The notes: generated from the sequence alone by a model not told the origin. A DNA stretch of 64,000 nt from Mobula hypostoma (GCF_963921235.1 NC_086110.1:13702001-13766000); one strand, 5' to 3'. Counted from the first letter of the stretch, positions 3,801-35,880 are shown. Numbers and translations are program-made.

Positions 3801-4088
3801 CACTGCTCAATACAAGAGGACATGGCTTTAAGGTAAGGGGTGGGAAGTTCAAGGGGGATATTGCAGGAAGGTTTTTTACTCAGAGAGTGGTTGGTGCGTG
3901 GAAAGCACTGCCTGAGTCAGTGGTGGAGGTAGATACACTAGAGAAGTTTAAGAGACTACTAGACAGGTATATGGAGGAATCTAAGGTGGGGGCTTATATG
4001 GGAGGCATGGTTTGAGGGTCGGCACAACATTGTGGGCCGAAGGGCCTCTACTGTGCTGTACTATTCTATGCTCTATGCTCTATGCTCT
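871..4088 (+). mobile_element. 5'-truncated CR1 LINE (ORF1 end, endonuclease and RT) inserted in L1 ORF1
   Basis: ORFs 1313-2821, 2879-3421 and 3557-4015 carry AITETWL, GDFNF, KSPGPDG, SGVPQGSVLGP and FADNTK. (ctatgct)n tail. AAGC repeated at 867-870 and 4089-4092, and removing the insert rejoins the L1 reading EEALKL. Confidence 0.95.
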
Positions 4089-5003
4089 AAGCGCTTAAAC
4101 TGGCATGACAAAATAAAGGCTTTACGTGGAACATCTGTAAAATAAGTTTAGACCACGTTTACACACCGGGCATCCTTGCCAGACGGAAGGGATACGCGGA
4201 AACACGGAGGATCCTGAAGGGAAACAACATCAGATTTCAGGCCCTGTATCCAGCTCGGCTAAGAGTCTTTAACGACGAAGGGACAAAAAGCTATGCTACA
4301 GTGGAGGAGGCAACGATGGATTTGGCGGTTCGGGGCTACCCATAGAAGTTATCACCCAAGCGGAGTCGTTACTGGAGTAGATTGCGCTGTGGACATGGCA
4401 GCCAGGGCGGCGAGGACGCTCCATTCGAACCACAGTGCCAAGCTATAAGGAAAAGCTGGCAGTATTCAGACGCGAACGTACAGAGAGTACACAGAACGTA
4501 CAGAAAATCAGCATATAAATTACATAAACAACAAGCATACAATACAATTCATAGAATAAAGAATTCAAAAACAAAGCTTGTGGAGAATACAATAGGGAAA
4601 ATTCAAGAGAGTTTTGAAACATATTATCGAGCGCTGTACTCTCAACCCCGAGCCTCCAATGAGCCCCATATAGACACTTTCCTGAATTCTCTTGATCCAC
4701 CCAAGCTCACGGATTTACAAAATGCATGCCTATTAGAACCAATAACTGCCAAAGAACTGAAAGCGGCCATCTCTAGATTAAAGACCGGAAAGTCTCCAGG
4801 CTCAGATGGGTTTACCTCAGAGTGGTACAAATCGCTGAAGTCACAGCTAGTTTCATTATTACTCAACACCTTTAATTGGATCTTACAGAGAGGAGAAATT
4901 CCACTTTCCTGGAGAGAGACGATTATCTCAGTTATTCCTAAAGACGGGAAAGATAAACTAGAACGTGGAACCGGCGAATCAGTGCTCTTAATTTGGACTA
5001 GGT

Positions 5004-5633
5004 TGTGATGGAAATGAGACAGATTCCTTGGGTCGCAAAGGCCAAGAATTCCGGACACACAGCTTTTACAATAAGGAGTTTATTTACAAGGGGAGAGGAG
5101 ATTGGGAACAACAAAAGCGGCTGCAATATTCGCACAAACGCGCTTAGAATAGACGAACGTGGGAAAAGTCGGGTTGGCAGTACAATACACGGGAAAATGG
5201 TGTGGGGAGAGAGTACAGGTACATATAAAAGTAAGAGAAAAGTAACTACGAAACCTGTCACCCCTTGGCTACGGGCAGGCAGGGCTCTCTGCTACAGTGA
5301 CAACAATAAACTCTCCCAAAACTCTATTCAATTCACAGCTCACCACATGTCCCCAGCGCTATTCTGCAGTCTTCAGTAGGAGGGGGTCTCTCGAGGATGG
5401 CAAAAAAGAGAGCGATCCAAGCACATGTAGCACCCTTCATAGGTCAGGAGCTGGAGGATCTACCCGAGGTGTTTCACCGGGGGGGGGGGGTGGCAACGAC
5501 TTGGTGCTAAACGGGTTAATACAATTAAGGTGGCCAATGTTTAGGTGTGTATTGATTATTTGGGAGGGGTGAAATGTTGACTGGCATGTGGTGTGCCTTC
5601 CGACCAGGTAGAGGGCGGTGCTGAGCCGTGACA
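5004..5633. mobile_element. Solo-LTR-like TG...CA element inserted in L1 RT
   Basis: Begins TGTGATGG and ends CCGTGACA (6/8 inverted-terminal match). Interrupts L1 ORF2 at the ISALNLD/DYKLF region. AATAAA occurs on both strands. No clean TSD. Confidence 0.5.
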
Positions 5634-7381
5634 GGCACGGCTCTCTGGATACAGACTACAAATTATTTACATCTATATTAACGTGTAGACTGTACAAGCT
5701 TCTACCTGGCCTCGTCCACTTAGACCAGACTGGATTCATGCAGCAAAAAAAAAATCAGGACATCATAAGGAGAAATATACACCAACTGGAACAGATTATT
5801 AAGAACGGGACACAGAAATTGATAGTGGGATTAGACGCTGAGAAAGCTTCTGATTCAGTTAGTTGGGTATTTACAGACTGTTAGGAAGATTCGGCTTTCA
5901 AGGAAGTTTATTAAAGTAATCCAGACTTTATATGACAGCCCTGCAGCTCGAATTAAGATAAATGGGGACCTATCTGACTCTTTTGTTTTAGAGAGAGGAA
6001 CTAGACAGGGATGCCCAATTTCTCATCTCTATTTTGCACTAAACATTGAACCTCTTGCCCAACTAATAAGACAGAGCGAAATTGTAAATGGTATCAAGGT
6101 GGCAGGGATTGAAAAGAAGATGGCGCTATTCGCAGATGGCGTTTTAGTCTATTTGAGTGAACCAGAAAAATCATTTAGAGGATTGTTTACACTGTTGGAT
6201 GTGTTCGGGAAAATATCAAGTTATACAATTAATGTAAAGAAAACACAGGTTTTGTCCTTAAATTATACAGCATCCAAAATACTGCAGGATACATATGATC
6301 TTAAGTGGGAAGCTAAATCATTAAAATATTTAGGAATAACCCTGCCAAAAGATCTTTCAACATTGTCACAGGTAAATTAATTTCAGAAATAAAGCAGGTA
6401 TACATAGGTGGAATCTTATACCCTTTTTATGTTTAATTCAAGGATAAATACCATAAAATGAATATTCTCACTCGGCTACTTTACCTTTTCCGGATTTTAC
6501 CTGTGGAGGTGGACGGTAATCAATTCAGAGAATGGGACAAATGGATTTCCCGCTTTATCTGGCAAGGGAAAAAACCTAGAATCCGATTTAACACCTTACA
6601 GTTAGGAAAGGAAGGACGAGGTATGGCATTTCCTTGTTTGAGAATTTTTTTTTTGTGCTTCACAGATAACCCCTCCGTTATATTCGTGCAATAGGGTATA
6701 TAAGGCCAGATGGAAGAAAATAGAATTTGGATTGTTTAGCAGCTTTCCTCTACAAGCCTCAATAGCAGACAAAGGATTGATGGCCCAATTGGAAAAGATT
6801 AAAAACAGCTGGATAAATTTCATATTGGAAGTATGGCAGAAAGTGGCTAATTCATGTGGAATCAATAACATGTCAAACCTTTTCAGATAGTTTGCTTATG
6901 ATACCGAATTTCCTCCCAACAGTGGAGATAAAAGATTTGAACTGTGGATCAAGAAAGGTCTTACAACCTACCTCTCATTCACGCAAAAAAATTGCATTAC
7001 AAAGTTTTCAATCCCTGCAGGACAAACATGGCCTGGAACAGAATTACTTTTCAGGTACCTTCAAGTACGACATCATATAAACCAGAGTTGTAGATATACA
7101 GACTTATCAACAGTAGAATTAGAATTTTTCAAGATTCACAATTCGACTTACAATTCAATACTAAGCAAATCAGCTTCTCGATTATATAATGCCCTCTCTC
7201 ATGCCAAAAAAAGGAAATACATTGTATATTAAAGAGAAGTGGGAGAAAATAGCAGGGTCGGTACTTTCAGAGGAGGCTGGGGGAAAACTATGCAGCTTCC
7301 AGTGGTCTTCGACTAACTCTTTGATTTGGAGAGAACATTGTTGGAAAAATATTATAAGATACTTCAAGACGCCATACCAGA

Positions 7382-7690: not shown

Positions 7691-9629
7691 GCAATATAAA
7701 GACAGAAATGTGCCGTGTTGAAGAAAGTGTGGCTCCAAGGAGGCAAATCATTTCCATATTTTTTAGGATTGCCCTAAATTAAGTTTATATTGTGAAGGTA
7801 TTCACAGAACATTAGTTAAGGTATTTAAGTCTCAGATAACTCTGATAATTGAGAATCTCTATGTGGGGCATGTATTGTTTTTTGGAACACAAGAAAGATA
7901 TAAAGCTGCTGCAGGCCCTTTTAAAGGCAAGTAAGAAATCAATCGCCAGAAAGTGGTTAAATCCAACATCACCTACATTAGAAGATTGGCATGAAATCAT
8001 TTTGGAAATATTTAACATGGAAAAGATGACCTAATCACAGAGAATTCAAAAGAAAAAAAATCAAGTTTGCAATAAATGGATTGAATTTATAACCACTGAG
8101 CGAGCAGACTTTAGATGACTCTCCTTATGGTTTATACTGTTTGACTCAGCAACATAGTAATAATGTTAACGTAAAGACCCTTCACACAAATGTTTACTGA
8201 TATTTTTTTTTTGGAAAATGTGGAATTAACACAAGTAAAGAAAAGATCTGGGGAAATTTTGGACCAGAAGAGACACATGGAAATTAGTATTCAAACTCCA
8301 TTATTAATATTTTATAACAACTATTATCATTATTTAGATTAATAAAGTGGAATTACAATTCAATATTTGATTGCCTAATTATTTTCTATATGATTTCAAT
8401 GTGCACTTGTGAATGTACATATTAAAATAGATTTACTCATATAAAAAATGGAAAAGGTTATATATGAAAAAAAAGTTTGTGTATTACTTGTGAATACCTT
8501 ATCCAAATAAAAATAAAAGAACAAAAAAGAAAAAAAGACGGAATGATCGGGTCTGTGCAATAGACCGGAAGAGTAGATTCCGACTGAGCATTTCAGACAT
8601 TATCACCTTGAACGGCCGGGCAGTAGACAGGGACGGAATGGCTTATTGCTGTTCTTTTCTTAATTTTCTTTCTTTTATTTTATTTTATGACAATTTTCTC
8701 TAATGAATCAGAAAAAGAACCGTTTATCTTGCCAATTGTTACACGTGATATCCATCTTTGAAGAATGCAAGAAACGAAACGCAGCGCTGCTCTAGCCTGC
8801 ACTCATCGATAATCTATAGCTCTGAACCGCAACTGGATTCTCAGCTTCACAGCTTCTTTGATGTATTTACATCTGCGTATAATGTATGTTTGCTTTGATC
8901 TTTGGATGCCGGTGCGTATTTCGAATCGGGAATCTGCAGAGTGACGTAAGTCAGTTTGTCAGATCCACTTCCAGTAGTCTGTGAAAATAATGCAAAATCA
9001 GTGGTTAGTCGAGCACCTAGTGACCAGTTGAATCACACGATTGTAAAATAATTTAGAGATGTACTCATAAGTAATGAACTTTAGTTTGCTTGCACTTTAT
9101 GCACAATTTATGTCAACGTTGTTTCAAGATTTCACTTTATGATTTATATATTAGAGGTTCTTTCCTTACTTAAAAAGGACTTTAACCAAATCAAGTTAGG
9201 AGAGCAAAGAAATTCTTGAAGTAGCAGTAATGGTACAAACTAACTGGCTAACTTATAATAACATCGCATATTCTGTCATTTGAGTCTGATTACCGCATCC
9301 TATTTCATCTCTAGAGATCACAGGTGTTTACTCAGCTACACCTGCCAACGCAGTTCCAAATGCACATGGGCGTTGTCAGCAGTGGACAGCGCATAACTGA
9401 TAGAGTGAACGTTGGCACTTTGTTCAGTCAGGCTCTCTGATTACAGTTTTGTAACAATTCTGTATTTCCGGTAGTTCAGTTCTCCTCGGTTATTTTCAGA
9501 CACTCGTCTTTATTATGGAGCTGATAATGGGCGTTGGGAAGGATGACATTCCCAGTTTCGTGCTTTTTGGCGTTTCCTCATGTGCAAATTATATGTGAAA
9601 TTAAAATCGTAAAAGCAAGGAAAAAGTAA

Positions 9630-10800
9630 TCTCTAGAGATTCTGCAGATGCTGGAAATCTTGAATACTGCAAACAACATACTGAAGGAAATCATTAGGTA
9701 GGGCAACATGCAAGTAGGTAAATAAATTGGCGGTTGTTTCTGGCAAAGACGCTTTATCAGGATTGGAAAAGAGGGACAGAACCTAAATTATAAAGGTGTG
9801 GTGGGGATGCGGGAAAACTAGCAGGTGACAGGTGAAACCAGGTAAATGCTAAGGTATGTGGATGATTGGTGAAAGAATGACGTAAGAAGCTGGGAGGTGA
9901 CGGGTGGAAAAGGTAAACCGTATGTAAGGGGTTTCTCCTTTATGTTACTGTTTAGGCTAATCAAAATGGTTCCTTTGTTATGTTACTGCTGAGAAAGTGC
10001 TTCTCTCTCTCTCGCAGCTTGTTTGGGTTGTAAAGAGAATTGTATTCATTTGCTAACCAATTGGGATAGATGCTATTCTTTCTTGTGTGTACGTAAGCTA
10101 TTGTTTCGCGGACTTTGGGCGAGACTGCGCGTGGAGACAGAGACAGGAGACGCGATGTTGTAAATTGGGCGGCGGGACTGACCCCGAGCAGGAGTCCGAG
10201 GCCCAGGGTCTTCGGCGAGGAGAGGAGACGAAGACAGACTCGCGTGGAGCATCTGGTCGCCACCGTGGTTGGCCCCAGGCGGTGGGTCGAGGAGGTCGGG
10301 GAGGATTGAATGGTGGGAAGAAGACTACCTTAACCGAGCTCCGACTGTTGCGCACGAAGCAGTTGAGCTTTGGTAAGTTTGGCGCCTTTTACTTTCATTT
10401 TATGTTTTATTTCTATTAATTACATAGTTCCAGTAACATCTATAAAGTGTAATCAGTTAATCACATATGGTGTATGGTCTGTTATTTGGCGGGGTGGGGT
10501 ACATCACACAGCATCCACACAAACTAGATTACCCAGTTTGGTGGGGCCGAAGGCTGCTCTCCCTAGACGAGAGCGAGCTCAGCGAGCCTAAGGCTTGCCA
10601 GGAGGCTACACGTGTCTGAAGGAATCGGATACGGGAGGACTGTGGTCCCTGCAAATCAAAAGAAGAAGGAGCCCGAGGGTGGGGACGACCTGATGGGTAG
10701 ATGACGAGAAGAGAAAAGGGTAAATGGAGAATGAAAGAAAAAGAACGGAACGATAGGGAAATTCCCAAAGGTTAGAGAAATCGACGTTTATGCCTTCAGG
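9630..10800 (-). repeat. Degenerate purine-rich Penelope-type repeat interrupted by a solo LTR
   Basis: ttctgcagatgctggaaatc start, purine-rich body, and a minus-strand CTGATAA...GAAAC core at 9736-9762. Family assignment is from recollection of this repeat type. Confidence 0.45.
9923..10610 (+). mobile_element. Solo LTR (probably Gypsy or ERV)
   Basis: TGTAAGGGG...GGCTACA termini. Flanks CGTA and CGTG form a 4-bp TSD with one mismatch. No coding capacity. Confidence 0.7.
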
Positions 10801-10913
10801 TTTGAGTCTCCCGAGATAGAAGAAAATATTATGCTTTTACCAGAATATTAAATTGTATAAGGCGATACTTTTCACTGAAAGGGGATTAGCTACGACGCGT
10901 TTTATATTTTGTT

Positions 10914-11410
10914 ACCACAAGACCACAAGACAAAGGAGCAGAAGTTGGCCATTCGGCCCATCGACTCTGCTCCGCCATTTTATCATGAGCTGATCCATTC
11001 TCCCATTTAGTCCCACTCCCCCACCTTCTCACCATAACCTTTGATGCCCTGTCTACTCAGATACCTATCAATCTCTGCCTTAAATACACCCAATGATTTG
11101 GCCTCCACTGCTGCCCGTGGCAACAAATTCCATAGATTCACCACCCTCTGACTAAAATAATTTCTTCGCATTTCTGTTCTGAATGGGCGCCCTTCAATCC
11201 TTAAGTCATGCCCTCTCATACTAGACTCCCCCATCATGGGAAACAACTTTGCCACATCCACTCTGTCCATGCCTTTCAGCGTTCAAAATGTTTCTATGAG
11301 GTCTCCCCTCATTCTTCTAAACTCCAAGGAATACAGTCCAAGAGCAGACAAACGTTCCTCATATGTTAACCCTCTCATTCCCGGAATCATTCCAGTGAAT
11401 CTTCTCTGTA
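10914..11410 (-). mobile_element. CR1 3' fragment
   Basis: Minus ORF 11007-11270 (FPMMGESSMRGHDLRIEGRPFRTEMRRNYFSQRVVNLWN) and a (cttgtggt)n-type tail. Confidence 0.9.
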
Positions 11411-11490
11411 TTTTGTTACAGTGTCAATGGTATGCTTAAGTTTGTAAAATTAACTTCCTCTTGGATGATGATTTTATATATAAACCCTTT

Positions 11491-11615
11491 GGGGTACTTC
11501 GGTTTCCTCCCAGGTTCCAAAGTCTTACAGGTTAGGAGGTCAATTGGTCACGTAAGTGTTACTGAGCAGCATGGACTAATTGTACCGGAGAGCCTGCAAC
11601 CGTGCTATATCTCTG
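11491..11615 (+). mobile_element. SINE fragment (V-SINE/HE1-like core)
   Basis: gggtacttcggtttcctcccaggttccaaag core. A related copy lies on the minus strand at 40831-40960. Confidence 0.55.
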
Positions 11616-12257
11616 ATGTAAGTCTATATCATAATCATACTAATCTCCTTGCTTTACCTGGGAATAGATAACGTGCTCCTCCGGTTGTCGATCTTTGCGA
11701 AATCGTTTGCTGACGCTGTGGTTTAGTGAAGCGTAGGCAGTGGTGTGCTCAACCGGTGCTTGTTCAGCCTGTTAGAAAAACATATTTAGTACAGCTAACT
11801 GAGACAGAACTCAGTGATCATAAACTAAATTAGAGTTCTAAAACATAACACCAAGGATAAAAAAAAATTGTTTGAAAAACATTTTGTCTGCGCACAATTA
11901 TACTCTCCGTACATTATACCGAAGGTGAGATCTCGACCGTTTCAGGCTTGGAAATCGCTATGTTTAGATTTTCAGAACACCGCTTATAACAGTCCTAGGG
12001 ATAGGATGGTGTTCTCAGTTCTGGCCATCTCTGTTTTTTTTTTCCATCTCCTAAATTCTATCTCTTACATCGCTCTAAATTCTGTGCACGGGCACAGGCC
12101 TATCTCGGCACAGGATCTATCTTTTACGCATGCGTCGCATTATTGTACTCATTGTCCTGATCAGAATTCGTCTGAAACTGTGACCGTTACCGCTCATATT
12201 ATTTAAATTAAGGATATTGGAGCAAATGGCAAGTCCTGATGCTAAGTGTCGCTTAAC

Positions 12258-12392
12258 TCAAGCCCGTAACACGGGAGCGGCATCCTGCACTTCTGTTGAT
12301 TTGATTGGTTTTCCTGGTGAATCACTTAAATTGCGATCGGAGTAGGTAGAGCCATTGGACGTGGTCGTTGCAGTAAATGATAAAAATGGTAA
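12258..12392 (-). CDS. Candidate terminal exon of the VJ-C1 gene
   Basis: A phase-0 AG at 12394-12393 opens LPFLSFTATTTSNGSTYSDRNLSDSPGKPIKSTEVQDAAPVLRA*. The acceptor is weak and no homology was recognised. Confidence 0.3.
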   Translation of the reverse strand, partial: LPFLSFTATTTSNGSTYSDRNLSDSPGKPIKSTEVQDAAPVLRA

Positions 12393-15300
12393 CTGTATTG
12401 CTGAAATAATGGCATACATTCCAGAGTAATAAAGTAATAGTAAAAATTTAATCATGAATGCTTCAGCTTCAACTTAAATATTACTGTAAGAAGTAGCCCT
12501 AAATTTCCGGAAGTTTTACAAACACTGCTAGAAATTTTAGCGGTATTCTACCATTATGAAATCAGTGATGTGTGCATGACTACCTTATCTTAGCTGCTAC
12601 AGTCGCTTCGTTTGCATCTAAAGTCGTTACGTAAAATTAAAACGAAATTTGTTGAACTGGGGAAGTGATTAATGAAACACTAGAAGACAAATGTTATCAG
12701 GAGAATGAATCCAGGCGGAAAAAAAAAACATTGAAGTGCGGGAAACATGAAGTAAAACAGAGAAATAGAATACAGAAAATTTTAGTAGATCAGGAACAAC
12801 CAGTTAAACAGAAATAGTTCACGTTCACTTTGCATTCTGCGGTCGTCAATCTAGAGTGTCAACTGGTTCCCTTTCCAAAATCGGTCAGTAGCTACAGATT
12901 ATTTTCTGGTTTGAATCCAAATGGGAGAGGACAATACTTTTTATCCGTTTTAGGCTTTGCTTCCCAAATTGAGGATGATAATCATTCAGCGTAGCATAGT
13001 GGACTAGAAGGTGTCATGTGGGGTTTCGTTTAACATGTGGTTATCATTGTTCACCACATACTACAAGGTCTTGTTGCAAGTATATTCGATACCATTGCAG
13101 GTTACGCACTGCTGTGCGTATCTTTTTGCAGATCGGGGTTAAAACTGCATTTAATATTGCTAGAACCATTTCAGTAAAACAAGATTCCGTTACATTTTTA
13201 CCTTGATGCTGTCCGTCAGTCAAATATAACATACATTACGAATTGATTCGTGCACGTAAGGTACTTTCCCATTGTCCAGTCAACTGCGATTCTCGTAAGC
13301 TAGCATTAAGTAGTTTCTCACACTCTCAGATATGTGTTGAAATACTCGTCAAAACAACTCACCTTCCAATGGTAAATATTACTGTTCACCTGACAATCCA
13401 ACCGGTTATGAACCGGTGTGGATTCTTGAAAGGTTACAAGAAGCAGATGCAAGGAAAATATTCAAATAAATCTTGGATATATACTTGAAAATAAATACTT
13501 GACGGGGAAAATTGTTTTATTTTCCCTACCACGCTCCAAAGTGTTATGCAATAAAATACATTCATAATATCTTTGCTATGCAAATATCCCGCTCTGAAAC
13601 AAGACTAGTCGCTTCACCTACCGGGTCTTCATTCTGACATCCCTCCAAAGAATTTGTGTTACCCCCTTCAGAAAAGAGAACAAAAATAAATGATTTGCAT
13701 TGTAAACATTGAACATTTTTCATTTGATACCAATATAATTAATTAAGTGGAACTGCTGAAGGTACGGATCTTGCAGAAAATATTTGTTAGTAACAGTCGT
13801 GCTAATATACTGTGTTCTGCATTAAGCTGGTGCTAAGCTGAAAAGGCATTGACTTTCAACAAGGTTGTAAAGTGATCATAGCATAACAGCGGCGGTGCTG
13901 TATTTAAGTATGGCAAACAAAATGGAAATTAAAACCAATGAGACGGGCATAAGTTGGTCAATGTTCTTTGCACAATCAGAGGGAATTTAGATATACGCCA
14001 AGACGTTTACGTTTCAAAATACGGAGCTACCATTGTACGGAAAAGACATTTGAAGAACTCCAAAGGGATATAACGGCATTCGTAAATCAGATATGAAATA
14101 ATTCCAGTGGAATCGTGAAATAGTTAAATTTTAAGATCAAGCATGTATTGTGACAGAATATTATCATTGAAATTCGGCTTCGTAAATCGTGATCCATGTC
14201 CAATCATTCTGTAAATGTCATTTACTGTTTTGAAGTTAAATATCATCAACGCTTCTATTTTATACGAATAGAGGTGATGTAAGAAAAGCGATCAGTTTCC
14301 TTACCGTGTGATCTCTTTAACTTCAGTCTCAGCAAAAGTATTATCAGAATTAAGATTGCCGATCCGCCCGCTGCACGTTCGAGAATCAATCTGGTATCAG
14401 CGCCTTGAAAAAGAAACCGTGAACCATTCATACAACTAAACACAAATCCACACATGACAATCAATAGTGCAAACTATTCTTTAGGCTCCTTTCATATCTC
14501 ACCACACAATGATTGGAAAATGCACAGAGTATACAATATAGAACAAAGATATCCGATTTTTAGTTTCTCCAGACACATACGAGCTATTTTCTGAGACTAA
14601 GAATAGGCTCGGCTGCATCTTCCTATACTTCTCTTGACAATAGATATCAGCAAAACTATAGAACGTGTAAACATCAAACAAGATACGATTCTGATCTCGA
14701 TTCAACCGGTTAAATCATGTCTGTCAAGAAGATTCTTTCGTACGATCAAAATGTAAAGGTAACTCGTTGAATCGCCACAGGAGTCCCGATGCAACAACAA
14801 TTCGCTTCCGCATTACATGCTGAAATTACTCGTTAACTTCATGAGTTTATAACACTGTAATCTCTAAGCCTCCTGAATGTGTATCGAGCATATTAAACGT
14901 ATATTCCCACTGTTATGGTTTCCACAGGTTTAGGAGTGACAAACTCGAATTCATGGAAAACTGCGTAATGAAAACATAGACAAAACTAAGTCATCCATTT
15001 GAATTCTGCTGCCTACTATTATTAGAAGGTAATTACGCGGAGATTAAATTTTGACAAAGTCTGTCCACAGTTTCGCTCCCTATGCATTCGTTTCAGGTGG
15101 CAATTAAGTGTCACACCTCAGTGTTCAGGAATTCCTATCTTCATTCAGATTTTGCCCCATCTCCACATTTTTTTCCGGTAAAACTATGTCAATTAAGTAC
15201 ACCTTCGCTTATCAGCAGATGGTTTCCCCCGTTGTTATATCACCATGAGATTCAGAGTTTGTTTTACTTTGTCTCATTTTTGACTAATGTCAAGAATTTT

Positions 15301-18300
15301 GTTACCTTACAAGTACTACACGAATTTAATTTCTTAATTCATCCTGCACGATTTAAACTGAGGGTATAAGAAATTTGTTTTAACACCATTCACATTGAAT
15401 GTTCACTGCAAACAAGTAATCTTAACATTCCGCCCTTCTTCTGTGTTTGGGTAGCTATTCAGCCCCTGTTCTTAACCAGGTTTGATCTACCCACCTATAT
15501 TGTTTGGAAACGTTTCCAACTTCCCGGAACGCTAGAGATTCTGAACGTGTTAAAAACTCAGAGTAGCACACAAAATACTGAAGGTACGCAGCAGATCAGG
15601 AGAGGAATAAAGTAACGACGTTTAGATCCGAGACCTGATGTCAGGACGCAATCAAGACACCATCTTACCTTGCTCCAGGATGTGGCTGAAACAAGCAGGC
15701 ACCGTGAGGGAGACATGCAACACCAGACAGATGTAAACATCTTTTCCCCAAGCAGACTGATTAATTTCCAATAAACTGTAAGCCTCATATAAACCCTCCG
15801 CCGTCCGGTTAATATCCGTTTTTATTCCAGTGTGAATTTGCCTGTTATTTTCTTGCCAGACGATTTGTAATTCCTTCGGGTAGAAGGCAGCTGTTTTACA
15901 AAGGAGTTTCCGAGGAGACGAAAACTCTGCAATAGGAACGATTTCCAATGGAGTTGGGGGAGCTTGAATAAAAAGAGAGTTATTTTGGGTGTTACAATCC
16001 ATTTAGTTCAAATAAATTCCTTTATCTTCCCGCCAATTTCAATGACATCTCATTATCAAATTAGTTACCCGCCATAGGTTCCCAGTATTTTACAAATTAT
16101 TTTAAGTTCAAGTTCAAGTTCATAGTTAATAAACCACACAGATGTACATGGCTAAATGAAACATCCTTCTTTATACTTTATACTATATACTTCATTGTCT
16201 TCTGGGGTCAACTGCAAAATGCAGTCCATGTATTCACACACAGCACGTGCAGTCACCATCCAGTACATACAGTGCAAAATAAACAAAGCAAAATCGAGGC
16301 ACCGTGCAGAGACAGATGAAAGGAAGAATTCGAAGAAGACACCGAGAAGGTGAATCTAAGGCGTGAGAGGTGAGAAAGACATTCTGTTTTGAATGGTCTT
16401 TCAGCTTTATCACATGATTCTCTTTGCGGCAGCGCGTTGGCTTTGGAAAATATTCCTTTCTGTATTTTTTCCATTTCCAATCAAAACTGAACGATAAAAC
16501 CCAAAATATGACAGATGTCCACACTCCGAATGCAAGAAGCTCTTGCACGTTGGTTTAATATTCTGGCAACTCATTTGTTCAGGTAGCTTTTCAGAGCTTA
16601 CGTTGGAGCTTTCCAGTTATAAACATTCACTGATAGAGTTTTCCTCGGAATGTATATCATTGCTAGAAAATTTCTCCCGCATCTAATGTGTTGAATGTGG
16701 CAAATCCTACCCTCCATGAAACAACTAGGAACGGGAAAGCGGAGATGATATTAAACGCATTTATTCTACATTTCTATTCTTTCATAAACCTGTCGGCCTG
16801 CAGCAAAATGGTCGAAAATGACCTGGCACTGCTATACGAACGATGGTGCCCTGCAGAGAGGCAACCGAGGAGCTGAACGAACTCCGCTTCTCTCTGCAGA
16901 GATTTCACTGAAAGGTAAGCCCAAAATTCACGATCTTGTAAATGTGGACTGCTCCCGCTACAACTATGGTTCGTATTTAACTTAGGAAAGTCTATTTTCA
17001 GATTTCTTTATAAATATTTCACAACAGTTAGCATTTCACTCTGCCTACAATGGCCATCCTGAGATCACGGTTGCCCGTACAGCACTGCCATGGACCATAT
17101 ACAGATGACAGATGTTTATGTGCTTGTTGCCATGAGGCAAATTAGTTTGTATAAATCCTCATGGCCCGAGTTGGAGTCCCATCCGAAGTCTTGGGAGGCT
17201 CGTGCATAATTTGAAGGTGCCTTGATAGAGGTATTCAAAATATCCTGACCCACGGGTGAGGAGCCGGAACTGGACATGACTAATTTTTGCAGATGTTCAA
17301 GAAACGCTCTAAGAATGCGCCGCAATCTTTCAGGCTGGTGAGCCTGACGCTTGCAAAGGGTAACTTATTGGAAATATTCCAAGTGACAGGATACATAACT
17401 ATTTAGACAGGTGTGGGAATAGCCATCAAGATCATGCGCATGGTAAGCAGTGTCTGGCTTATCTTAACGAGCTTTTTGAGGAGTTTACCAGAGACCATGT
17501 TGAAGGAAATACAGTAGATGTTGTCTACATGGCAAAACCTTGTGCAAAGTCCGGAATGAGAGGCTGATCAAGATGGTTCGGTTGGCATTCAGGATGAAGT
17601 AGTAAACTGGATTTCACATTGGCTTGGCGGGAAAGCCAGGGAGTGGTAGTGGACGGCTTCTCTCTGACTGGAGGCCTGTAACTAGAGGTGTGCCACGGGA
17701 ATCGGTGCTGGTTACGTTGTCAGTTGTCATCGATATTAATGATTTGTATGATAATGGATTAAACTGGTTCAGGAAATTTGCAGATCTGGAGAGTAGGGAA
17801 TACATGCAATGTGATACGGGACAGCTGTTAAAATGGACTGTAAAATGACAGCTGGAATTTAGCCGCTTCCGAATTCCATTTGTGCGCAACTCTCTACCCT
17901 TTACATTTAAACCTATCAAAATTCATCTCGATTTTACGATTTCTATGTCTCTCCCTATTTTGAAAGGGGAAAGAGGTATAGATTTTGAAAACTTTTGCAA
18001 AACACATTTGGATTGATAATTTGCAGCGCTTGCGACAAATAGGTAAATTATATTGCTATTAATACTTTTGGATCTGGGTGAGTTTGTAACCTTGACATAT
18101 CCTATAAGAGAGTTGATAAAATTGTTCATGATTTGCATCCTGTGTGATGGGAAATCGAGCTTTCCAACTACAGCCACTCACATTAGTAACAATATTATTT
18201 CGACATCTTGCCTGCAAAGCAAATGGACTTGAAAATTAATTCCTTGTTTTTGAAGCACCATCCCGATAATAATGCTAAAGTCGAAGGGTATCACTAACCT

Positions 18301-19178
18301 TGGACATTAGCTTTAAATAGGGGATTGCCGATCGATAGGTCTGCACTAACAGCAGTTGTAAGGAGTACGATACAACAAACAGAATCAACGTTATTTCTCG
18401 CCCAATTGACGCTGCCTGAAATGTGATAATTTGCTTCTGTTCTTTTTAACTCTACAATTGGAGCTTGTAGAATGGGGTTTACTTTAACGCGTGAAACAAA
18501 TCCACACTCGCCATTTGTTTTATCAAATAGTAACATTACATATTAATCTCATCATTAGCTTTAATTTAAATTGCACAAAAGAGAAAATCTCCTCGCAGCC
18601 GCACTAACCGAACACAGTGAGCTTGGAGCCACTTCCATTCCAGAAAGATTGTTCCCGATACTTTGCTCCACAGTAGTAAGTTCCGGAATCGGCGAATTTC
18701 ACATCCAGAAGAACAAGCGTTCCTCTTGTTTTGTCGAGACTAAATCGTTTTCTGCCGTCACTTTCTAAAAATGCATTCTCGCCTTCCCTCCACCAAAGAA
18801 AGTTAACAGTATCTTTTGATATTGGAGTATTGCAGTGCAAGGTAACATTCGTTCCGCCCGGAACGTCCAAGTCCGTAGGGAATTGATATACTCTGAACGC
18901 AAGCACTTCGACTGCTGCCGGAAAAAAAAACAAGAGCATTAATAACAGCTACACACAGGGAATAAATAAGAACCTAAAGACGTGCTGTATGTTACTGAAT
19001 AACGAAGAGACAAAGACGACAGAATTGCTCAACCGCTGAAACTAGGTATGCAGCGGGAACCCAGGTTTAAATTTTCTAAAACAGAATACTCAGTTCAGAA
19101 ACGGAACATTTAACTTAGCATACATAGACAGGTAATAGCCAGAAGCGCCATGTACGAAACCGTAAATTTCTCTGACAT
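12258..19178 (-). CDS. Non-rearranging IgSF receptor gene: leader / germline-joined VJ / C1 / TM / cytoplasmic exons (VJ-C1, SIRP- or NCR3-like architecture)
   Basis: Exons 19178-19124, 18914-18609, 15962-15669, 14403-14305, 13665-13618 (or 13622) and 13424-13363 all have GT/AG ends. Leader through TM are phase 1 and splice into one open frame. The last exon 12392-12258 is tentative. Confidence 0.85.
13363..13424 (-). CDS. Cytoplasmic exon 2
   Basis: Acceptor ttccttgcatctgcttcttgtaacctttcaAG and donor aag|GTGAGT. Open in phase 1 as (E)STPVHNRLDCQVNSNIYHWK. Confidence 0.6.
13618..13665 (-). CDS. Cytoplasmic exon 1 (two possible donors, ending at 13622 or 13618)
   Basis: Strong acceptor tttgttctcttttctgaAG. 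Reads GGNTNSLEGCQNEDP(V), followed by ccg|GTAG|GTGAAG. Confidence 0.7.
   Translation of the reverse strand, partial: GVTQILWRDVRMKTR
14305..14403 (-). CDS. Transmembrane exon
   Basis: GADTRLILERAAGGSAILILIILLLRLKLKRSH: hydrophobic core followed by a basic stop-transfer segment. 99 nt, phase 1-1, GTAAGG donor. Confidence 0.85.
15545..15645 (-). repeat. Degenerate Penelope-type short repeat just downstream of the C1 donor
   Basis: Minus strand reads tcctgacatcaggtctcggatctaaacgtcg...ctgctgcgtaccttcagtattttgtgtg. Confidence 0.45.
15669..15962 (-). CDS. C1-set Ig domain exon
   Basis: LLCKTAAFYPKELQIVW...YICLVLHVSL matches the C1 signature [FY]xCx[VA]xH. 294 nt, phase 1-1, ttattcaAG acceptor and GTAAGA donor. 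Confidence 0.95.
17385..17850 (+). mobile_element. Old degenerate CR1 RT fragment in the V-C1 intron
   Basis: Remnant WRPVTRGVPRESVLVTLSVVIDINDL...KFAD. Confidence 0.8.
18609..18914 (-). CDS. V-type Ig domain exon with germline-joined J motif
   Basis: NVTLHC...FLWWR...DSGTYYC...FWNGSGSKLTVF. 306 nt, phase 1-1. Polypyrimidine tract, NAGNAG acceptor (ggcAGcAG) and GTTAGT donor. Confidence 0.95.
19124..19178 (-). CDS. Leader (signal peptide) exon
   Basis: MSEKFTVSYMALLAITCL plus one base, then a GTATGC donor. Joins the V exon to give ...TCLSVEVLA/FRVYQFP. Intron is 209 bp. Confidence 0.75.
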
Positions 19179-19279
19179 ATTACAGAAACCGAACCGAGCA
19201 ATTTTGGGGTACAAGTGATATTCTGAGGAGTTTGCGGAAGGAATAAAAATTCAAGAGTAAATATATGAACCGTGTAACC

Positions 19280-19296
19280 ATGACGTAGGATGACGC
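19280..19296 (-). promoter_or_regulatory. Tandem CRE half-sites upstream of the VJ-C1 start codon
   Basis: Two TGACG motifs (19281 and 19291) about 100-120 bp upstream of the ATG, with an AT-rich TATA-like catatattta about 20 nt further downstream. Motif match only. Confidence 0.3.
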
Positions 19297-19564
19297 CTCA
19301 CCAAGACAGAAGCAGGTGTTTCAAAGATCGTTATACTGGGCAGACAGGGCAGTGAGACCTCTTCCCTTTTCAATTGTTAAAGGGCTATCCAGGGCTTTCA
19401 AATTTATGTTCGGATTTTGTGCACTATGCTGAATTCAGGAATTATCCATTTCTTTATTTCGAACTAAATTCAGATCTGTGCTCTGCCAAGTGATCCCAAA
19501 TATGGAAATCCACCGCGGAGTCATAAATATCTAATAAAATCTGCGGTTTTGAACTGGATGGGTA

Positions 19565-20415
19565 AGATGGCACTAGCGACAAATGCGACTAACGGCGAAT
19601 TCTTGCAAATGTTCACGATATTTTTCTTCTTCTTCTCCTTCTTTTAAAAAGCATTTTAAATATTATTAATGTGTGCGCGATTGGAGCCTGCAATAAACAA
19701 ATTGATAATGTGTCTTTGGACCAATTGAGGGATCTGGCGCTTTTGGTCTCTCCGAAGGGATTAATGCGTGGTTGAGAAAGAAGCTGAGAACTGAATATGC
19801 GGCTTACTGGTGGAGCATGAATCCAATCGGCTCCGGTATTCGCCTATCTCGCAATAAAAGCGTCGAGCAAGATTCAAAATAAACATGGATGATAGCGCAT
19901 AGCGAACGGGCGTTCAGAGCATCTGTCTGCGTTAAACTCCTCTCTCTCTCTCTCTCTCTCCTTTTCAGTGGTTGCCCGAAGAAGATCATAGAGTCTTGGG
20001 TCGCGGGCAATCGGCACGATCTGTGGATTTGATTCATTTTTAGAGGACTGCTATTTCATTTTATGTGTGTTTCTGGCTACACCATTTTTGTTGCTAATTT
20101 GGACGCGTTTGATGGAGCGCTTCGACGCTAATTGGTTCTGCGGACTACAGCAACATTTTACACCGAACTGAACGACGCCGAACATTCCTAGATTGTTTAA
20201 GGACTCTGGTTTGATGTTTACTATTCTGTGTGTTATTCATTAGTTTTTGCCGTCTGCACGATCTGTTCCTTTATTCCCATAGGATGTTTCATACATTTTT
20301 TTAAGAATGTATCCATGGTGTTTCTTTTTTTCCTGGCTGCATGCGGGAAAACAAATCTCAGGCTGTATACTGCCGACATACTTTGATAGCAAATATACGT
20401 TGACAATGAATCTGA
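19565..20415 (+). repeat. Interspersed repeat (LINE 3'-UTR or SINE-like) containing a (CT)n tract
   Basis: aagatggc start, CT run at about 19937-19961, and a 3' end aaatctcaggctgtatac...actttgatagcaaatatac resembling LINE tails. Family unresolved. Confidence 0.4.
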
Positions 20416-21756
20416 CAAAATAATAACAAGCTTCTTTCATTTCAATTTAGCTTCGCTGTGTTGCTCCGTTTCAATCATATACCATCGGGCAATGATCAAC
20501 TCCCACCACTAACCCCCCACCCCCACGTCCTATGCATTTTCTTGATTATATTTTAGCTCATCTCCCTCTTTCGTTCGAACTCTAGCTGCTCCTGCAAGGA
20601 CATTCTGTAACTCCAAACTGAATTTTGATAGCCATGATTCATATTGTTCTTATCTCACCACTGCACTAACGGTTCCAGAAAACGAGGAGAGCATGTGCGC
20701 TGTTATGGAAAGAAAGACTTTAAGCCTTGACGGGTCAGGTGGGTGTTGCATAAATTAATTTTTTTTCTCCTGATAATTTCCTTTAGGGTTTGTTTATAAA
20801 AGTCCGATTGAAGAAATACTGTTTAATATCTGGAAAAGAAAACCGAAAAGAAATCGATGAACACGACTGGTTTGAACAGTAAGTGCATTCCCTCGGACAC
20901 CGTCATTCACATATCTCCGGTGCAATGTGTGATTTTGGATTCTGAGCAGTCATGAAACTGCATAAGGAAAATGACATATGGTCGAGCAGTAGGTGTATTA
21001 CTTCAGCAATTTTATGAAATGTAAACGCTCGATCATTCGGTGGCGGTATATATTTTATGAAACAAAAGCATAATAATATGGAAACTTCATAAATATATTC
21101 TAGGGATGGATTTGTCGGGTTGTTTTTGGACAAAGTCGGCCCCATGGTTTTCAGCTTCCTCGTTCGCTGCTCTGGCCATTTCGCACGTAGAACTCGGCGA
21201 GAAGCAATAACAAGTGTGGTCTCTGATAGAAAAAAAATAGGATACCGGATAGAGGATGCTGATCACAATGAAGAGAGAACTTAGAGTTGAAACTATACGT
21301 CATTCAGTTTAATGATGATGGTAACACAGAGGTTCGGGAACTATTGCGACTAAATCTATAAAGGGTGCATTGAGGTCACCGCAACTGTTTAACTGCAGTT
21401 CCAAGGATTCATTTTATATCCAATCAGCACGAGTGGAACACGGGGTAATGCTGCTATTTGAAACATTTATTAAATTTGCACAAAGTAACAGGAAGACAGA
21501 AAGAGAATCAATCGGATCTAATGGTTAACCCGGTACAGACATAATAAGCATTCGAATGATAATCATGCAACCATTTGTCTGACACGGCAACGCATACACT
21601 CTTACTCGTTTCTAAAATAAGAATGCAGAATATTCTTCAAACCGTCGTGATTGGCGGTGAAACTATGCTGAGCTTCTTGCGAAAGAAGTAAGGACTCTGA
21701 TTACCAATTCGATCGCCAACTAATTTTCAACAGTTGTGCAATTAGGAATTTTCAAC

Positions 21757-23825
21757 AGTTATGCGGAGCTTCTTTCTTCCTGTCAGGATTAAAGGCAAAG
21801 AGAATAGGAATAAGGATCCTTGGTTCTCAACCGATATTGCAACTCTGATACAGAAGAAGAGGGAGTTGTATGACATGTATAGGAAACAGGGAGTAAATAA
21901 GGTGCTTGAGAAGTATAAAAAGTGCAAGGAAATACTTAAGAAGGAAATCAGGAGGGTTAAAAGAAGACATAAGGTTGCCTTGGCAGTCAACGTGAAGGAT
22001 AATCCAAAGAGCTTTTACAGGTATATTAAGAGTAAAAATTTGTAACGGGTAAAATTGGTCCTCTTGAAGATCAGAGTGGTCGGCTATGTGCGGAACCAAA
22101 AGAAATGGGGGAGATCTTAAATAGTTTTTTTGCGTCTGTATTTACTAAGGAAACTGGCATGAAGTCTTTGGAATTAAAGGAAACAAGTAGTGAGACCATG
22201 GAAACTGTACAGATTGAAAAGGAGGAGGTGCTTGCTGTCTTCAGGAAAATTAAAGTGGATAAATCCCCGGGACCTGACAGAGTGTACCCTCGGACCTTGA
22301 AGGAGACTAGTGTTGAAATTGCAGGGGCCCTGGCAGAAATATTTAAAATGTCGCTGTCTACCGGTAAGGTGCCGGAGGATTGGAGAGTGGCTCATGTTGT
22401 TCCGTTGTTTTAAAAAGGATCGAAAAGTAATCCGGGAAATTATAGGCCGGTAAATTTGACGTCAGTAATTGGTAAATTATTGAAGGGAAGACTGAGAGAC
22501 AGAATCTACAAGCATTTGGATAGACAAGGACTCATTAGGGAGAGTCAACATGGCTTTGTGCGTGGTAGGTCATGCTTGACCAATCTATTGGAGTTTTTCG
22601 AGGAGGTTACCACGAAAGGGGATGAAGGGAAGGCAGTGGATGTTGTCTATATGGACTTCAGTAAGCCTTCGACAAGGTCCCGCATGGGAGGTTAGCTAGG
22701 AAAATTCATTCTCTAGGTATACATGGAGAGGTGGTAAATTGGATTAGACATTGGCTCAACGGACAAAGCCAAAGAGTGGTAGTAGAGAATTGCTTCTCTG
22801 AGTGGAGGCCTGTGACTAGTGGTGTGCCACAGGGATCAATGTTGGGTCCATTGTTATTTGTCATCTATATCAATGATCTGGATGATAATGTGGTAAATTG
22901 TATCAGCAAATTTGCTGATGTTACAAAGATTGGAGGTGTTGTGGACAATGAGGATGGTTTTCAAAGCTTGCAGATGGATTTGGACCAGCTGGAAAAAATG
23001 GGCTGAAAAATGGCAGATGCGTTTAATACAGACAAGTGTGAGGTATTGCACTTTGGAAGGACAAACCAAGGTAGAACATACAGGAGTAATGGTAAGGCAC
23101 TGAGGAGTGCAGTAGAACAGAGGGATCTGGGAATACAGATGCAAAATTCCTTCAAAGTGGCGTCACAGGTAGATAGGGTCGTAAAGAGAGGTTTTGGTAC
23201 ATTGGCCTTTATTAATCAAAGAGCTATAATGTTATGATGAGGTTGTATAAGGCATTGGTGAGGCCGAATCTGGAGTATTGTGTTCATTTTTGGTCACCAA
23301 ATTACAGGAAGGATATTACTAAGTTTGAAAGGGTGCAGAGAAGGTTTACAAGGATGTTGCAGGGACTTAGGAAACTCAGTTACAGAGAAAGGTTGAATAG
23401 GTTAACACTGTATTCCCTGGAACGTAGAAGAATGAGGGGAGATTTGATAGAGGTATATAAAATTATGACGGATATAGATAGAGTGAATGCAAACAGGCTT
23501 TTTCCACTGAAGCAAGCAGAGAAAAAAAAACAGAGGACATGGGTTAAGGGTGGGGGGATGGAGTTTAAGGGAAACATTGGGGGGTGCTTCTTCACACAGA
23601 GAGTGGTGGGAGTGTGGAATGAGCTGCCAGACGAGGTGGTAAATGCGAGTTATTTTTTAACATTCAAGAATAAATTCGACAGATATATGGATGGGAGGTA
23701 TATGGAGGGACATCGTCCGTGTGCAGGTCAGGGGACTAGGCAGAATATGGTTCGGCACAGCCAAGAAGGGCCAAAAGGCCTGTTTCTGTGCTGTAGTTTC
23801 TATGGTTTCTATGGTTCTATGGAAT
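21757..23825 (+). mobile_element. 5'-truncated CR1 LINE
   Basis: Frameshifted RT ORFs 21761-23884 (KSPGPD, QHGFVRGRSCLTNL, SGVPQGSMLGP) and a (gtttctatg)n tail. Confidence 0.95.
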
Positions 23826-23857
23826 CGCCACGAATCAGCGGGGACGTTGCGCTGTTT

Positions 23858-24030
23858 TTATTGACACGGTATCGCCGTCACTGAACTGTATCTCCTGCCC
23901 TCTCCGAAATGAAATCGTGTAGGTGCTTCGAGCATGAAGTTGTTCGCAGTTAACACATATTTTATCCTTGGATCCCAGTGGATGTAATTAAGGTCGGGTT
24001 GTTTATAAGTTCGTCCAGGAGAGGATGAAT
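23858..24030 (-). pseudogene. Diverged tandem duplicate of the ITIM tail segment
   Basis: SSPGRTYKQPDLNYIHWD...RFHFGEGRRYSSVTAIPCQ*, colinear with the 24159-24290 segment. The stop codon overlaps AATAAA. Confidence 0.55.
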
Positions 24031-24203
24031 CAATGCCGAGCTTCCATGTGCTTCCTACGAACAGAGTCAACATTCTCATTACCGTGCCTATCGCCACACC
24101 ATTTTACCCAGTTATGCATCGGAAATTTCCATGAATCGTTTGGGATGTTATGCCACTTTCACAGACACATGGTCGCCACCATTTAATTCAATCACATGTC
24201 CTC

Positions 24204-24328
24204 TCAGAAATGAAGTCGATCACAAAAACACACATCCAGCTGGATGTAATTGAGGTAGGGAAGTTGAGGAGGCTGGCTGGAAGAGGACACGACATTGTTA
24301 ATATTGTTAATCTTATCCTGCTGCGGAT
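24204..24328 (-). pseudogene. Orphan ITIM-bearing cytoplasmic terminal exon of a second receptor gene (intact or pseudogene status unknown)
   Basis: Acceptor ttttttttttctcttacaattcatccAG. Phase-1 frame (D)PQQDKINNINNVVSSSSQPPQLPYLNYIQLDVCFCDRLHF*. LNYIQL at 24237-24254 fits the ITIM consensus [ILVS]xYxx[LVI]. Confidence 0.55.
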
Positions 24329-33604: not shown

Positions 33605-34830
33605 GACTATTACTGGACTTTTCACTATCATAACTACCTCCGCGGTATTAAGCCTGGAGTACAATTTATTTTATAAGACTCATATGCGTCTGGATGGTAA
33701 CCGTACTGCGTGTTATCCTTTGGTAATATCTGTAGAAGCATTGTTTGTTGCTAACCCATCAGGGCTAAATAAGGAAAGCTTAAAAGGGGGGCTGTGGGAA
33801 AGTGCCTCAAGAGAGTGGGTGGTGAAACTACTGGCGAGGGCATTGGGGATTATCCCTTCTGTTTTGCAGGGGAGGGAGAGGGATGCGTCCTTGTCAGGGT
33901 TCTCTCGGAGTTACCTTGCCTGAAGAAACATTGTCCAGACCGCCGATGTAGGATAGACCAGGGAATATTCTCTTGCAAATGTATCCACGAACAATGCGTG
34001 CCCCTGTTTAAGGGAATTCAGTATGTATGTGGATATTGCAATGGGACTCATGTGTCGGCAGGTTCAGAGACTTTTGACTATTCTTCCCTGTATCCACAGG
34101 AGCACTTGTGGTATGACGAAATAGTGACTTACAAAAATACCTGTGACCGGGCCAGGACAGGATATGTGCTATTGTTCAACGGTACCTATACTACAGCTAC
34201 CACCACTATGCCTAACCTTCTCGCAGTAGGAACGATTGGACCACTTCCTGTTCCCTGCCCTCAGGTTGCCCACGTTCAACGGCGACTGACAGCTTGAGCC
34301 GTGAGTAAGGAATTCTGTACTGACTGGAGGAATCCTGTTGCTCTTCTCTGGGCTATGGGTTTGCAAGCACTCTCTCTCTAGGGGGTTCAGGGGTAAAGAA
34401 CCACAACTTGCTCATTTGTGGGCTGGCGCATTGGGAAACAGTACGATGGAAGGTCTGGAGGCTGTTAACAGAGAACTGGTGGCGTTGCGACTCTACGCAC
34501 AGCAGACCAGGTATACTATGGATTATCCGTTGGCCCAACAGGGAGGGGTATGCACCATAGTGGGAGACAAATGTATCACCATGTTACTGACGAATCATAC
34601 GACGTGACCCATGCCATTCAGTCCATTAAGAAACAGTTGGATGATTTCAGGTAAGGTTCGGGGAAGGGGGATGGCTGGTTAGGATGGTTGCAGGGAGGAT
34701 CATGAGGGTCTTATTTACTGCATGGACTGATTATTCTCATTGTTATAATTATTGCTTGCTGTGTGGTAATAACCTGCCTAAATGCTGGCTGCTGACTTCT
34801 CACGGAAAGACTGATGGCACTCTGCTCTAC
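33583..34830 (+). pseudogene. env: ERV env, compact and frameshifted
   Basis: Reconstructed signal peptide MGSAGGLRLLL(G)LFTIITTSAVLS, Cys-rich SU with CGYC, HVQRR cleavage-like site, QTRYTMDYPLAQQGGVCTIVGDKCIT, and TM anchor LLHGLIILIVIIIACCVVITCL. Confidence 0.85.
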
Positions 34831-35464: not shown

Positions 35465-35880
35465 GAAGCAAAAAGACGGAAGAAGTCAGACGATTTCAAC
35501 CGTGGGGAATTCTCGGTCATGTGACGTATCACAGGTACAGCCAGCATTTCACAAGATACCTCCCGCGTCCGTCGTCCACTTATAAGTATTTAGAATGTTA
35601 ATTCTACGAATACTCCATGATCACGAGTTTCGAATGGTAGAGTGCACAATATTGACCACTCAAAGCAGTTTAGACATTATCATAATACTTCGGTTTTTTT
35701 CAGCTTTCTCCTTAATCGCTATGATCGTCATTTTCTGTTCTTCATTCGTCACTCTGCATGCTTACAAATAACAAGGAAGCTTAAAGGGTCTAGGATCCTT
35801 CCCCTCGATCATGGCTGATCCAATCATATTCTCAGGCCACGTTTTCTTTTTCCTCCGCAGCTCATATCGGTATCCTGAAT

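Follow-up and report, generated by a model that had tools for sequence, protein, structure and literature searches.

The stretch of DNA analyzed here, hereafter the window, comprises 64,000 nucleotides (nt) of the genome of the lesser devil ray, Mobula hypostoma (GCF_963921235.1 NC_086110.1:13702001-13766000; all coordinates below count from its first letter). Its minus strand carries a receptor gene of seven exons, which extends from 19215 to about 8780 and whose phases and splice sites were checked. The exons are all open (7/7) and the splice sites are canonical throughout; when spliced, they give a coding sequence that stays open over 1041 nt and encodes 346 amino acids. The protein is a type I membrane receptor that consists of a signal peptide, a V-like immunoglobulin (Ig) domain with a J-like strand, one C1-set domain, a transmembrane helix and a 95-residue cytoplasmic tail. 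A sequence-only reading of the locus had placed at 12258-19178 an antigen-receptor-like gene with a germline-joined V and J part, a C1 domain and a transmembrane segment.

The first exon (19124-19215) contains the 5' untranslated region (UTR) and the leader. It has an ATG at 19178, another in the same frame at 19151, and a phase 1 donor, T/gtatgc (the slash marks the splice point here and below). The N-terminus of the leader, MSEKFTVSYM, is kept among ray paralogues. The signal peptide is divided between this exon and the VJ exon (18609-18914, phase 1 at both ends), which encodes the last 5-6 residues of the signal peptide, the V-like Ig domain and the J-like G strand, and matches the Pfam V-set domain with an E-value of 2.6e-10 (40.9 bits, cut-off 26). 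As the 3' end of the VJ exon reads ...YYCGAKYREQSFWNGSGSKLTVF, the J-like G strand (WNGSGSKLTVF) lies in one exon with V, which is what the sequence-only reading had seen. Its description of the strand FWNGSGSKLTV as J-like holds for the GxG bulge, which is present, but not for the aromatic residue, which is displaced compared with the canonical FGxG. The next exon (15669-15962, phase 1 at both ends) encodes the constant domain, and its Pfam match to the C1-set (E 5.4e-11, 43.1 bits, cut-off 21) is far better than that to the butyrophilin-type C domain (0.009). It is followed by the exon for the connecting peptide and the transmembrane segment (14305-14403, GADTRLILERAAGGSAILILIILLLRLKLKRSH, donor in phase 1). 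AG/GT ends are present at all junctions from the leader to the transmembrane exon, and all of these junctions are in phase 1. Thus, the claims of a true C1 exon followed by a transmembrane exon, and of a common phase from the leader onward, were confirmed, as was the claim that the gene has no usable recombination signal sequence (RSS). A scan of 8000-20500 and of the whole window, which allowed up to 1 mismatch in the heptamer, up to 2 in the nonamer and spacers of 12 or 23 bp (+/-1), gave just one weak hit, at 8036, which lies outside every exon; neither in nor beside the VJ exon was there any.

The cytoplasmic part of the gene is longer than had been proposed. The search of the window by tblastn with the 346-aa protein of Mobula birostris revealed the cytoplasmic exons, which have polypyrimidine-AG acceptors and GT donors. 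The first, a mini-exon of 44 nt (13622-13665, GGNTNSLEGCQNEDP), was found by tblastn with orthologues; it is entered in phase 1 and left in phase 0, and is bounded by the splice sites ctgaag/GG and CCG/gtaggt. The second (11658-11768, AEQAPVEHTTAYASLNHSVSKRFRKDRQPEEHVIYSQ, which includes AEQAPVEH, TTAYASL and VIYSQ) carries the motif TAYASL and matches the M. birostris orthologue at an E-value of 8e-17 with 92% identity. The third (8847-8978; E 9e-19) starts after the acceptor ttcacag/ACT, encodes TTGSGSDK and LTYVTL and, further on, TLYADV and NTSKKL, and ends with a TGA stop, followed by a 3' UTR that reaches at least 8780. Hence, of the mini cytoplasmic exons that had been placed within 12258-19178, one (13665-13622) does lie there, but the other two (11768-11658 and 8978-8847) lie outside, as indicated by homology, by splice sites and by an RNA joint between 11658 and 8978. 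The 3' end at 12258 has to be given up, since the gene reaches 8847, 3.4 kb further. An open reading frame (ORF) at 12258-12455 was considered as the last exon and rejected, as it has no homology to any family tail and no splice junction.

The first 252 residues of the product are 100% identical to a RefSeq protein of M. hypostoma, XP_062923619.1, which is 252 aa long and named "immunoglobulin lambda-1 light chain-like". In contrast, the M. birostris orthologue, XP_072135231.1, has the full 346 aa, 325 of which are identical to those of the window product (94%), and the spans of the two genes are nearly the same (10.3 kb in the window versus 10.2 kb in M. birostris). The RefSeq model ends early because it omits the 44-nt exon at 13665-13622: when the transmembrane exon was spliced straight to the exon at 11768 in a reconstruction of such a skip, the frame read G/GC TGA, with a stop at ...RSHG. 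The omission is either an annotation slip or the reflection of a real tail-less isoform produced by a frame-shifting skip of this exon. What is new for the locus is therefore a corrected model of seven exons and 346 amino acids, together with an account of how the shortened RefSeq product arises.

RNA evidence came from low-depth Logan contigs of six small runs; contigs of X1, X2, X3 and X5 were aligned to the gene. A 652-nt contig of X1 joins 19215-19124, 18912-18609 and 15962-15709 over GT..AG introns, and a 306-nt contig of X2 spans the C1 exon and continues in 11 loose letters that match the start of the transmembrane exon. In agreement with these letters and with all family models, there is one C1 exon only between the VJ and the transmembrane exons. 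The transmembrane exon is also covered by an X5 contig (14304-14407, 1 mismatch), both flanks of which run into genomically non-adjacent sequence. As for the tail, a 256-nt contig of X2 has 11769-11658 joined directly to 8978-8835, with 4 mismatches, a contig of X5 (8780-8978) corresponds to the last exon and 3' UTR, and RNA depth is present in the bin of the mini-exon 13665-13622 in runs X1, X2 and X5. The C1-exon variants of X1 and X2 are different, and the V exon of X1 differs at 10 bases, with 6 amino-acid changes. Hence several near-identical alleles or paralogues are transcribed. Taken together, these contigs support the splice pattern of this type of gene (leader to VJ, VJ to C1, C1 to transmembrane, and cytoplasmic exon 2 to exon 3) through near-identical transcripts, though not specifically for the window copy.

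The tail, whose tyrosine motifs the sequence-only reading had missed, contains a canonical immunoreceptor tyrosine-based inhibitory motif (ITIM), LTYVTL, a canonical immunoreceptor tyrosine-based switch motif (ITSM), TLYADV, and a further TxYxxL motif, TAYASL, which is ITSM-like. The transmembrane core, AAGGSAILILIILLL, has zero charged residues, and neither the alignments nor the motif table of the family revealed a conserved membrane-proximal or connecting-peptide cysteine. As the tail is of the ITIM/ITSM type and the transmembrane core is uncharged, the function looks like that of SIRP-alpha or PD-1 rather than that of an antigen-receptor chain. We therefore consider it probable, with a chance of roughly three in four, that this seven-exon gene encodes an inhibitory receptor of the SIRP-alpha/PD-1 type and not an antigen-receptor chain. 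The description of the gene as antigen-receptor-like would then fit its V-J-C1 ectodomain, but not its tail or its uncharged transmembrane segment. In the proposed mechanism, the V domain would bind a ligand via its BC and FG loops, and the engagement of this putative ligand would let Src-family kinases phosphorylate the tyrosines of the tail. Phosphatases with SH2 domains, such as those of the SHP-1/SHP-2 type, could then dock on the phosphotyrosines and would damp the activation of whichever cell type carries the receptor.

Several observations weigh against this interpretation. Two of the tyrosine motifs in the tail, TAYASL and VIYSQT, are non-canonical as ITIMs. The RefSeq model of the gene has no tail at all, and the skip of the 44-nt exon could yield a tail-less product. 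Not one of the RNA contigs is an exact copy of the window gene, and those of the tail are 96.5-98.4% identical to it; when an exact match was sought for the whole locus and for the V exon alone, the best run contained only 21% of the V-exon words. Moreover, the protein encoded by the 652-nt contig of X1 differs from the paralogue XP_062923618 by 4 amino acids and from the window gene by 8.

The gene is not alone. An exhaustive search with the V exon yielded a 285-aa protein with 93% identity, XP_062923618.1, which has the neighbouring accession, as well as single-domain matches and two proteins of Callorhinchus. About 50 elasmobranch proteins were recovered at E-values of 1e-60 to 1e-158 in three word-indexed searches, two of them with family profiles. 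All of them come from rays and sharks, of the genera Mobula, Hypanus, Hemitrygon, Narcine, Pristis, Scyliorhinus, Heterodontus, Heptranchias, Mustelus, Cetorhinus, Carcharodon, Chiloscyllium, Rhincodon, Stegostoma and Pristiophorus. After a steep fall in score, the next matches below the family were IgW heavy chains of sharks, at 1e-30. No bony-vertebrate member was found in the three word-indexed searches, whose pre-filter scores only 8000 candidates, so that the absence is unproven. M. hypostoma has at least ten family members on one 80.6-Mb chromosome, on which the window gene also lies. The members have their architecture in common: a leader, a V encoded by one exon and with a G strand of the form NGxGSxLxV, a hinge (PPTPL), one C1 domain, a transmembrane segment and a tail with LTYAxL. 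This ITIM is kept in long-tailed members from Callorhinchus to Mobula, and a TxYxx[VIL] motif usually accompanies it. Short tails are found in many of the family models in the motif table; some of them may be annotation truncations, like that of XP_062923619.1, and the table is also compatible with short-tailed relatives that may act as activating or decoy partners.

In a maximum likelihood tree of the family ectodomains, the window gene has M. birostris XP_072135231.1 as its sister (support 93/80) inside a ray clade (100/99), and XP_062923618 with its M. birostris counterpart (the pair XP_062923618/P0159) forms the sister pair to both (95/80). Hence the duplication took place before the two Mobula species separated. 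The V domains of ray paralogues are 48-58% identical to that of the window copy and their C1 domains 64-79%, so that V is the more variable of the two. On these sequence grounds, the window gene is one intact member of a multigene family of cartilaginous fishes that comprises dozens of paralogues in rays, sharks and a chimaera. RefSeq names for the family range over SIRP-alpha-like (tyrosine-protein phosphatase non-receptor type substrate 1-like), NCR3LG1-like, PD-L1-like, CD276 homologue, tapasin-related-like, Ig lambda-like, T-cell receptor (TCR)-beta-like and MHC class II DP-alpha-like, an inconsistency that is expected where no characterised orthologue exists. Indeed, the only orthologues found when one-to-one orthology to a characterised gene was looked for are uncharacterised RefSeq models. 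We found no paper that describes the family, and the closest works, on UrIg/UrIg2 and on the cartilaginous-fish major histocompatibility complex (MHC), do not mention it. The proposal that the locus holds an uncharacterised chondrichthyan VJ-C1 gene is therefore right in that a non-rearranging VJ-like exon is combined with C1 and transmembrane exons in a family that has no paper of its own, but the gene had already been predicted in RefSeq and is not a lone one.

An AlphaFold2 model built on a 47-sequence alignment of the family has a mean pLDDT of 85.4. The first domain is modelled with strands A, A', B, C, D, E, F and G, with C' almost absent and C'' absent, so that the V domain of the sequence-only reading is supported by the Pfam V-set match but departs from a full V fold in the model. 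The second domain is modelled as a C1-type sandwich that includes a D strand, and the transmembrane helix as residues 220-250. In Foldseek searches against solved structures, the top matches were Ig light chains and TCR chains (E about 3e-16, about 22% identity), and in AlphaFold/Swiss-Prot they were the Xenopus CD276 homologue, PD-L1 and NCR3LG1 (E 2e-15 to 1e-14). The reviewed proteins within E 2e-15 to 1e-13, all at 15-22% identity, comprise CD276, PD-L1, TCR-beta, NCR3LG1, Ig kappa/lambda, butyrophilins, SIRP-alpha/beta and TAPBPL. The AlphaFold cluster library gave one shark protein at 2e-22 with 32% identity, and the rest at 1e-14 or weaker. The best rigid superposition of V and C1 together was that with rat SIRP-alpha (TM score 0.62, root-mean-square deviation 3.9 A over 215 residues).

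Over V and C1, the family profile aligned in one stretch with three solved proteins, namely with an Ig lambda chain at E 8e-40 (a whole-chain total that includes other domains), with UrIg2 at 2e-33 and with SIRP-alpha at 4.6e-29. The best solved relatives of the C1 exon are Ig constant domains, with UrIg2 second best (E 2.7e-15). In domain-wise profile searches of solved structures the rankings were driven by the summed scores of multi-domain proteins, and as these scores add up, such rankings do not discriminate between the candidates. The best full-length solved match of the V exon was CD79b (Ig-beta; E 2e-7, residues 3-99), which resembles it in being a short V-like domain with a J-like strand, but lacks a C1 domain and bears an immunoreceptor tyrosine-based activation motif (ITAM). 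This lead was dropped, as CD79b is missing from the top matches of the family V profile and its architecture differs. Judged by profiles and models, the family appears to form a lineage of its own within the VJ-C1 class, at about the same distance from Ig light chains, TCR, UrIg2, SIRP, B7 and TAPBPL.

UrIg and UrIg2, reportedly presented by Flajnik et al. in 2023 as non-rearranging VJ-C1 genes of elasmobranchs, resemble the window gene in their single-exon VJ, split leader, C1-type domains, lack of an RSS and distribution in cartilaginous fishes. However, the window protein has one C1 domain, a transmembrane segment and an ITIM/ITSM tail, and its family is highly multigene. UrIg is a secreted protein with three C1 domains, and the C domains of shark UrIg2 (structure 9dmx) number nine to eleven (PMC12227049). 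The gene of UrIg is linked to the MHC, and that of UrIg2 to the IgH/TCR-alpha-delta cluster (PMC12227049).

A likely functional model is SIRP-alpha (SHPS-1, PTPNS1), which likewise has a non-rearranging V with a J-like strand, followed by a C1-set domain, a type I transmembrane segment and several ITIM-type YxxL/V/I motifs, and which belongs to a multigene group with long-tailed and short-tailed members. The order of the tyrosine motifs in the tail presumably also resembles that of human SIRP-alpha. It could be argued from this that the window gene is an orthologue or co-orthologue of tetrapod SIRP genes, that is, a SIRP-alpha which lost one C1 domain or which predates the gain of it. RefSeq names many members after SIRP-alpha, the protein has SIRP-beta-like clusters as its neighbours in a language-model comparison, the family profile spans domains d1-d2 of SIRP-alpha in one stretch, and, as noted above, rat SIRP-alpha gives the best rigid superposition. 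However, SIRPs have two C1 domains and the window protein one, identity to SIRPs is only 16-20%, and other proteins match better in sequence: Ig lambda and UrIg2 outscore SIRP-alpha with the family profile, and the E-values of SIRPs are no better than those of B7-H3, PD-L1, TCR-beta, Ig kappa/lambda and TAPBPL. The lack of a bony-vertebrate member among the matches, within the 8000 candidates scored by the pre-filter, does not fit direct orthology either. We thus consider orthology or co-orthology with the SIRP genes unlikely, and regard the window gene rather as a probable inhibitory receptor of the SIRP-alpha type.

The ectodomain is also like Ig light chains and TCR chains. The likeness includes the order V-J-C1 with the C1-set domain directly after VJ, the plan of phase-1 exons, a leader split over two exons and the overall fold of two domains. 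As Ig genes joined in the germline are frequent in cartilaginous fishes, many of the shark Ig light-chain genes among them, the joined VJ exon might be secondary, derived from a RAG-joined germline ancestor of the Ig/TCR type that gained its transmembrane segment and ITIM tail later, in which case the gene would be no relic from before RAG. The prominence of Ig light chains and TCR chains among the solved Foldseek matches, and of Ig lambda at the top of the family-profile matches, would be consistent with such an origin. But the joined state is common to rays, sharks and Callorhinchus, so that the joining event would be very old, and no member with split V and J was seen. Moreover, the V domain has neither a C'' strand nor a WYxQ-type interface motif, and its G strand reads NGxGS instead of FGxGT. 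Further differences from Ig and TCR chains are the identity of only about 20%, the lack of V and J segments and of an RSS in the window scan, the lack of conserved basic transmembrane residues and of an interchain cysteine, and the predicted inhibitory tail. A secondary joining is therefore rather improbable in our view.

Another question is whether the window copy is at all the one that works. It might be a silent or decaying recent duplicate, with its paralogues alone expressed, and the failure to find an RNA contig identical to it, the shortened RefSeq model and the richness of the surroundings in transposable elements would all be compatible with that. Against this stand the seven open exons with canonical splice sites throughout, and the one-to-one M. 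birostris orthologue of equal length with 94% identity. The RNA runs, in turn, were small, and gave only low-depth contigs, which drop variants. We regard a silent copy as improbable, and somewhat more so than a secondary joining. The weakest alternative, a ligand rather than a receptor, of the B7/butyrophilin type (NCR3LG1/B7-H6-like, PD-L1-like or CD276-like), would account for the IgV-IgC-transmembrane layout, for the top AlphaFold/Swiss-Prot matches and for the names of several paralogues in RefSeq, but it is very improbable given the C1-set score of the second domain (5.4e-11 versus 0.009 for the butyrophilin-type C domain), the J-like GxG bulge on the G strand, the conserved ITIM and ITSM in the tail, which are typical of receptors, and structural E-values that are similar to, but not better than, those of TCR, Ig light chain and SIRP.

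Apart from the receptor gene, the window contains essentially transposable elements only. Long ORFs for reverse transcriptase/endonuclease of the long interspersed nuclear element (LINE) type are present on both strands at 1313-6400, 21700-23900, 35800-37100, 38300-39000, 42400-45100, 50600-57800 and 60000-62000, and retroviral-type pol/integrase ORFs at 31036-34300 (e.g., 32510-33604, 364 aa) fit an endogenous retrovirus. Within the intron between cytoplasmic exons 2 and 3, the summed depth of RNA contigs over 10870-11440 reached 1e4 to 1e5 in all four runs. Variants and joints within it are numerous; this stretch is probably a highly repeated, transcribed interspersed element, and an Rfam search of it gave no match. 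Between the VJ and the C1 exon, the intronic positions 17090-17700 are matched at 95-99% by short RNA contigs that run into unrelated sequence on both sides and behave as fragments of transposable elements expressed elsewhere, not as exons of the gene. A candidate orphan ITIM exon at 23858-24328 gave no significant tblastn match to the tails of four family members.

For the window gene itself, the gain is modest: the public model is shortened and misnamed, and the true product, as far as can be read from the sequence, would be a 346-aa receptor of the inhibitory type. The family as a whole invites a bolder idea. To our knowledge, non-rearranging genes that combine a VJ-type V with C1 are few, and comprise those of SIRP, UrIg/UrIg2 and the tapasin type. 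The family might be a membrane-bound signalling descendant of the pre-RAG VJ-C1 lineage that stands behind Ig/TCR, UrIg and SIRP, in which a two-domain "minimal antigen-receptor chain" was kept as an inhibitory innate receptor and grew into a large cluster only in cartilaginous fishes, with the inclusion or skipping of the 44-nt exon serving as a switch between an ITIM-bearing and a tail-less form. We offer this descent, and the switch jointly with it, as a speculation that is unlikely to hold as stated. Non-rearranging VJ-C1 genes are nonetheless central to the arguments on what the RAG transposon invaded, and a minimal VJ-C1-transmembrane family of all cartilaginous fishes, inhibitory-tailed and spread over many megabases by its expansion, is a data set as yet uncited in current discussions (PMC12227049, PMC10751288).

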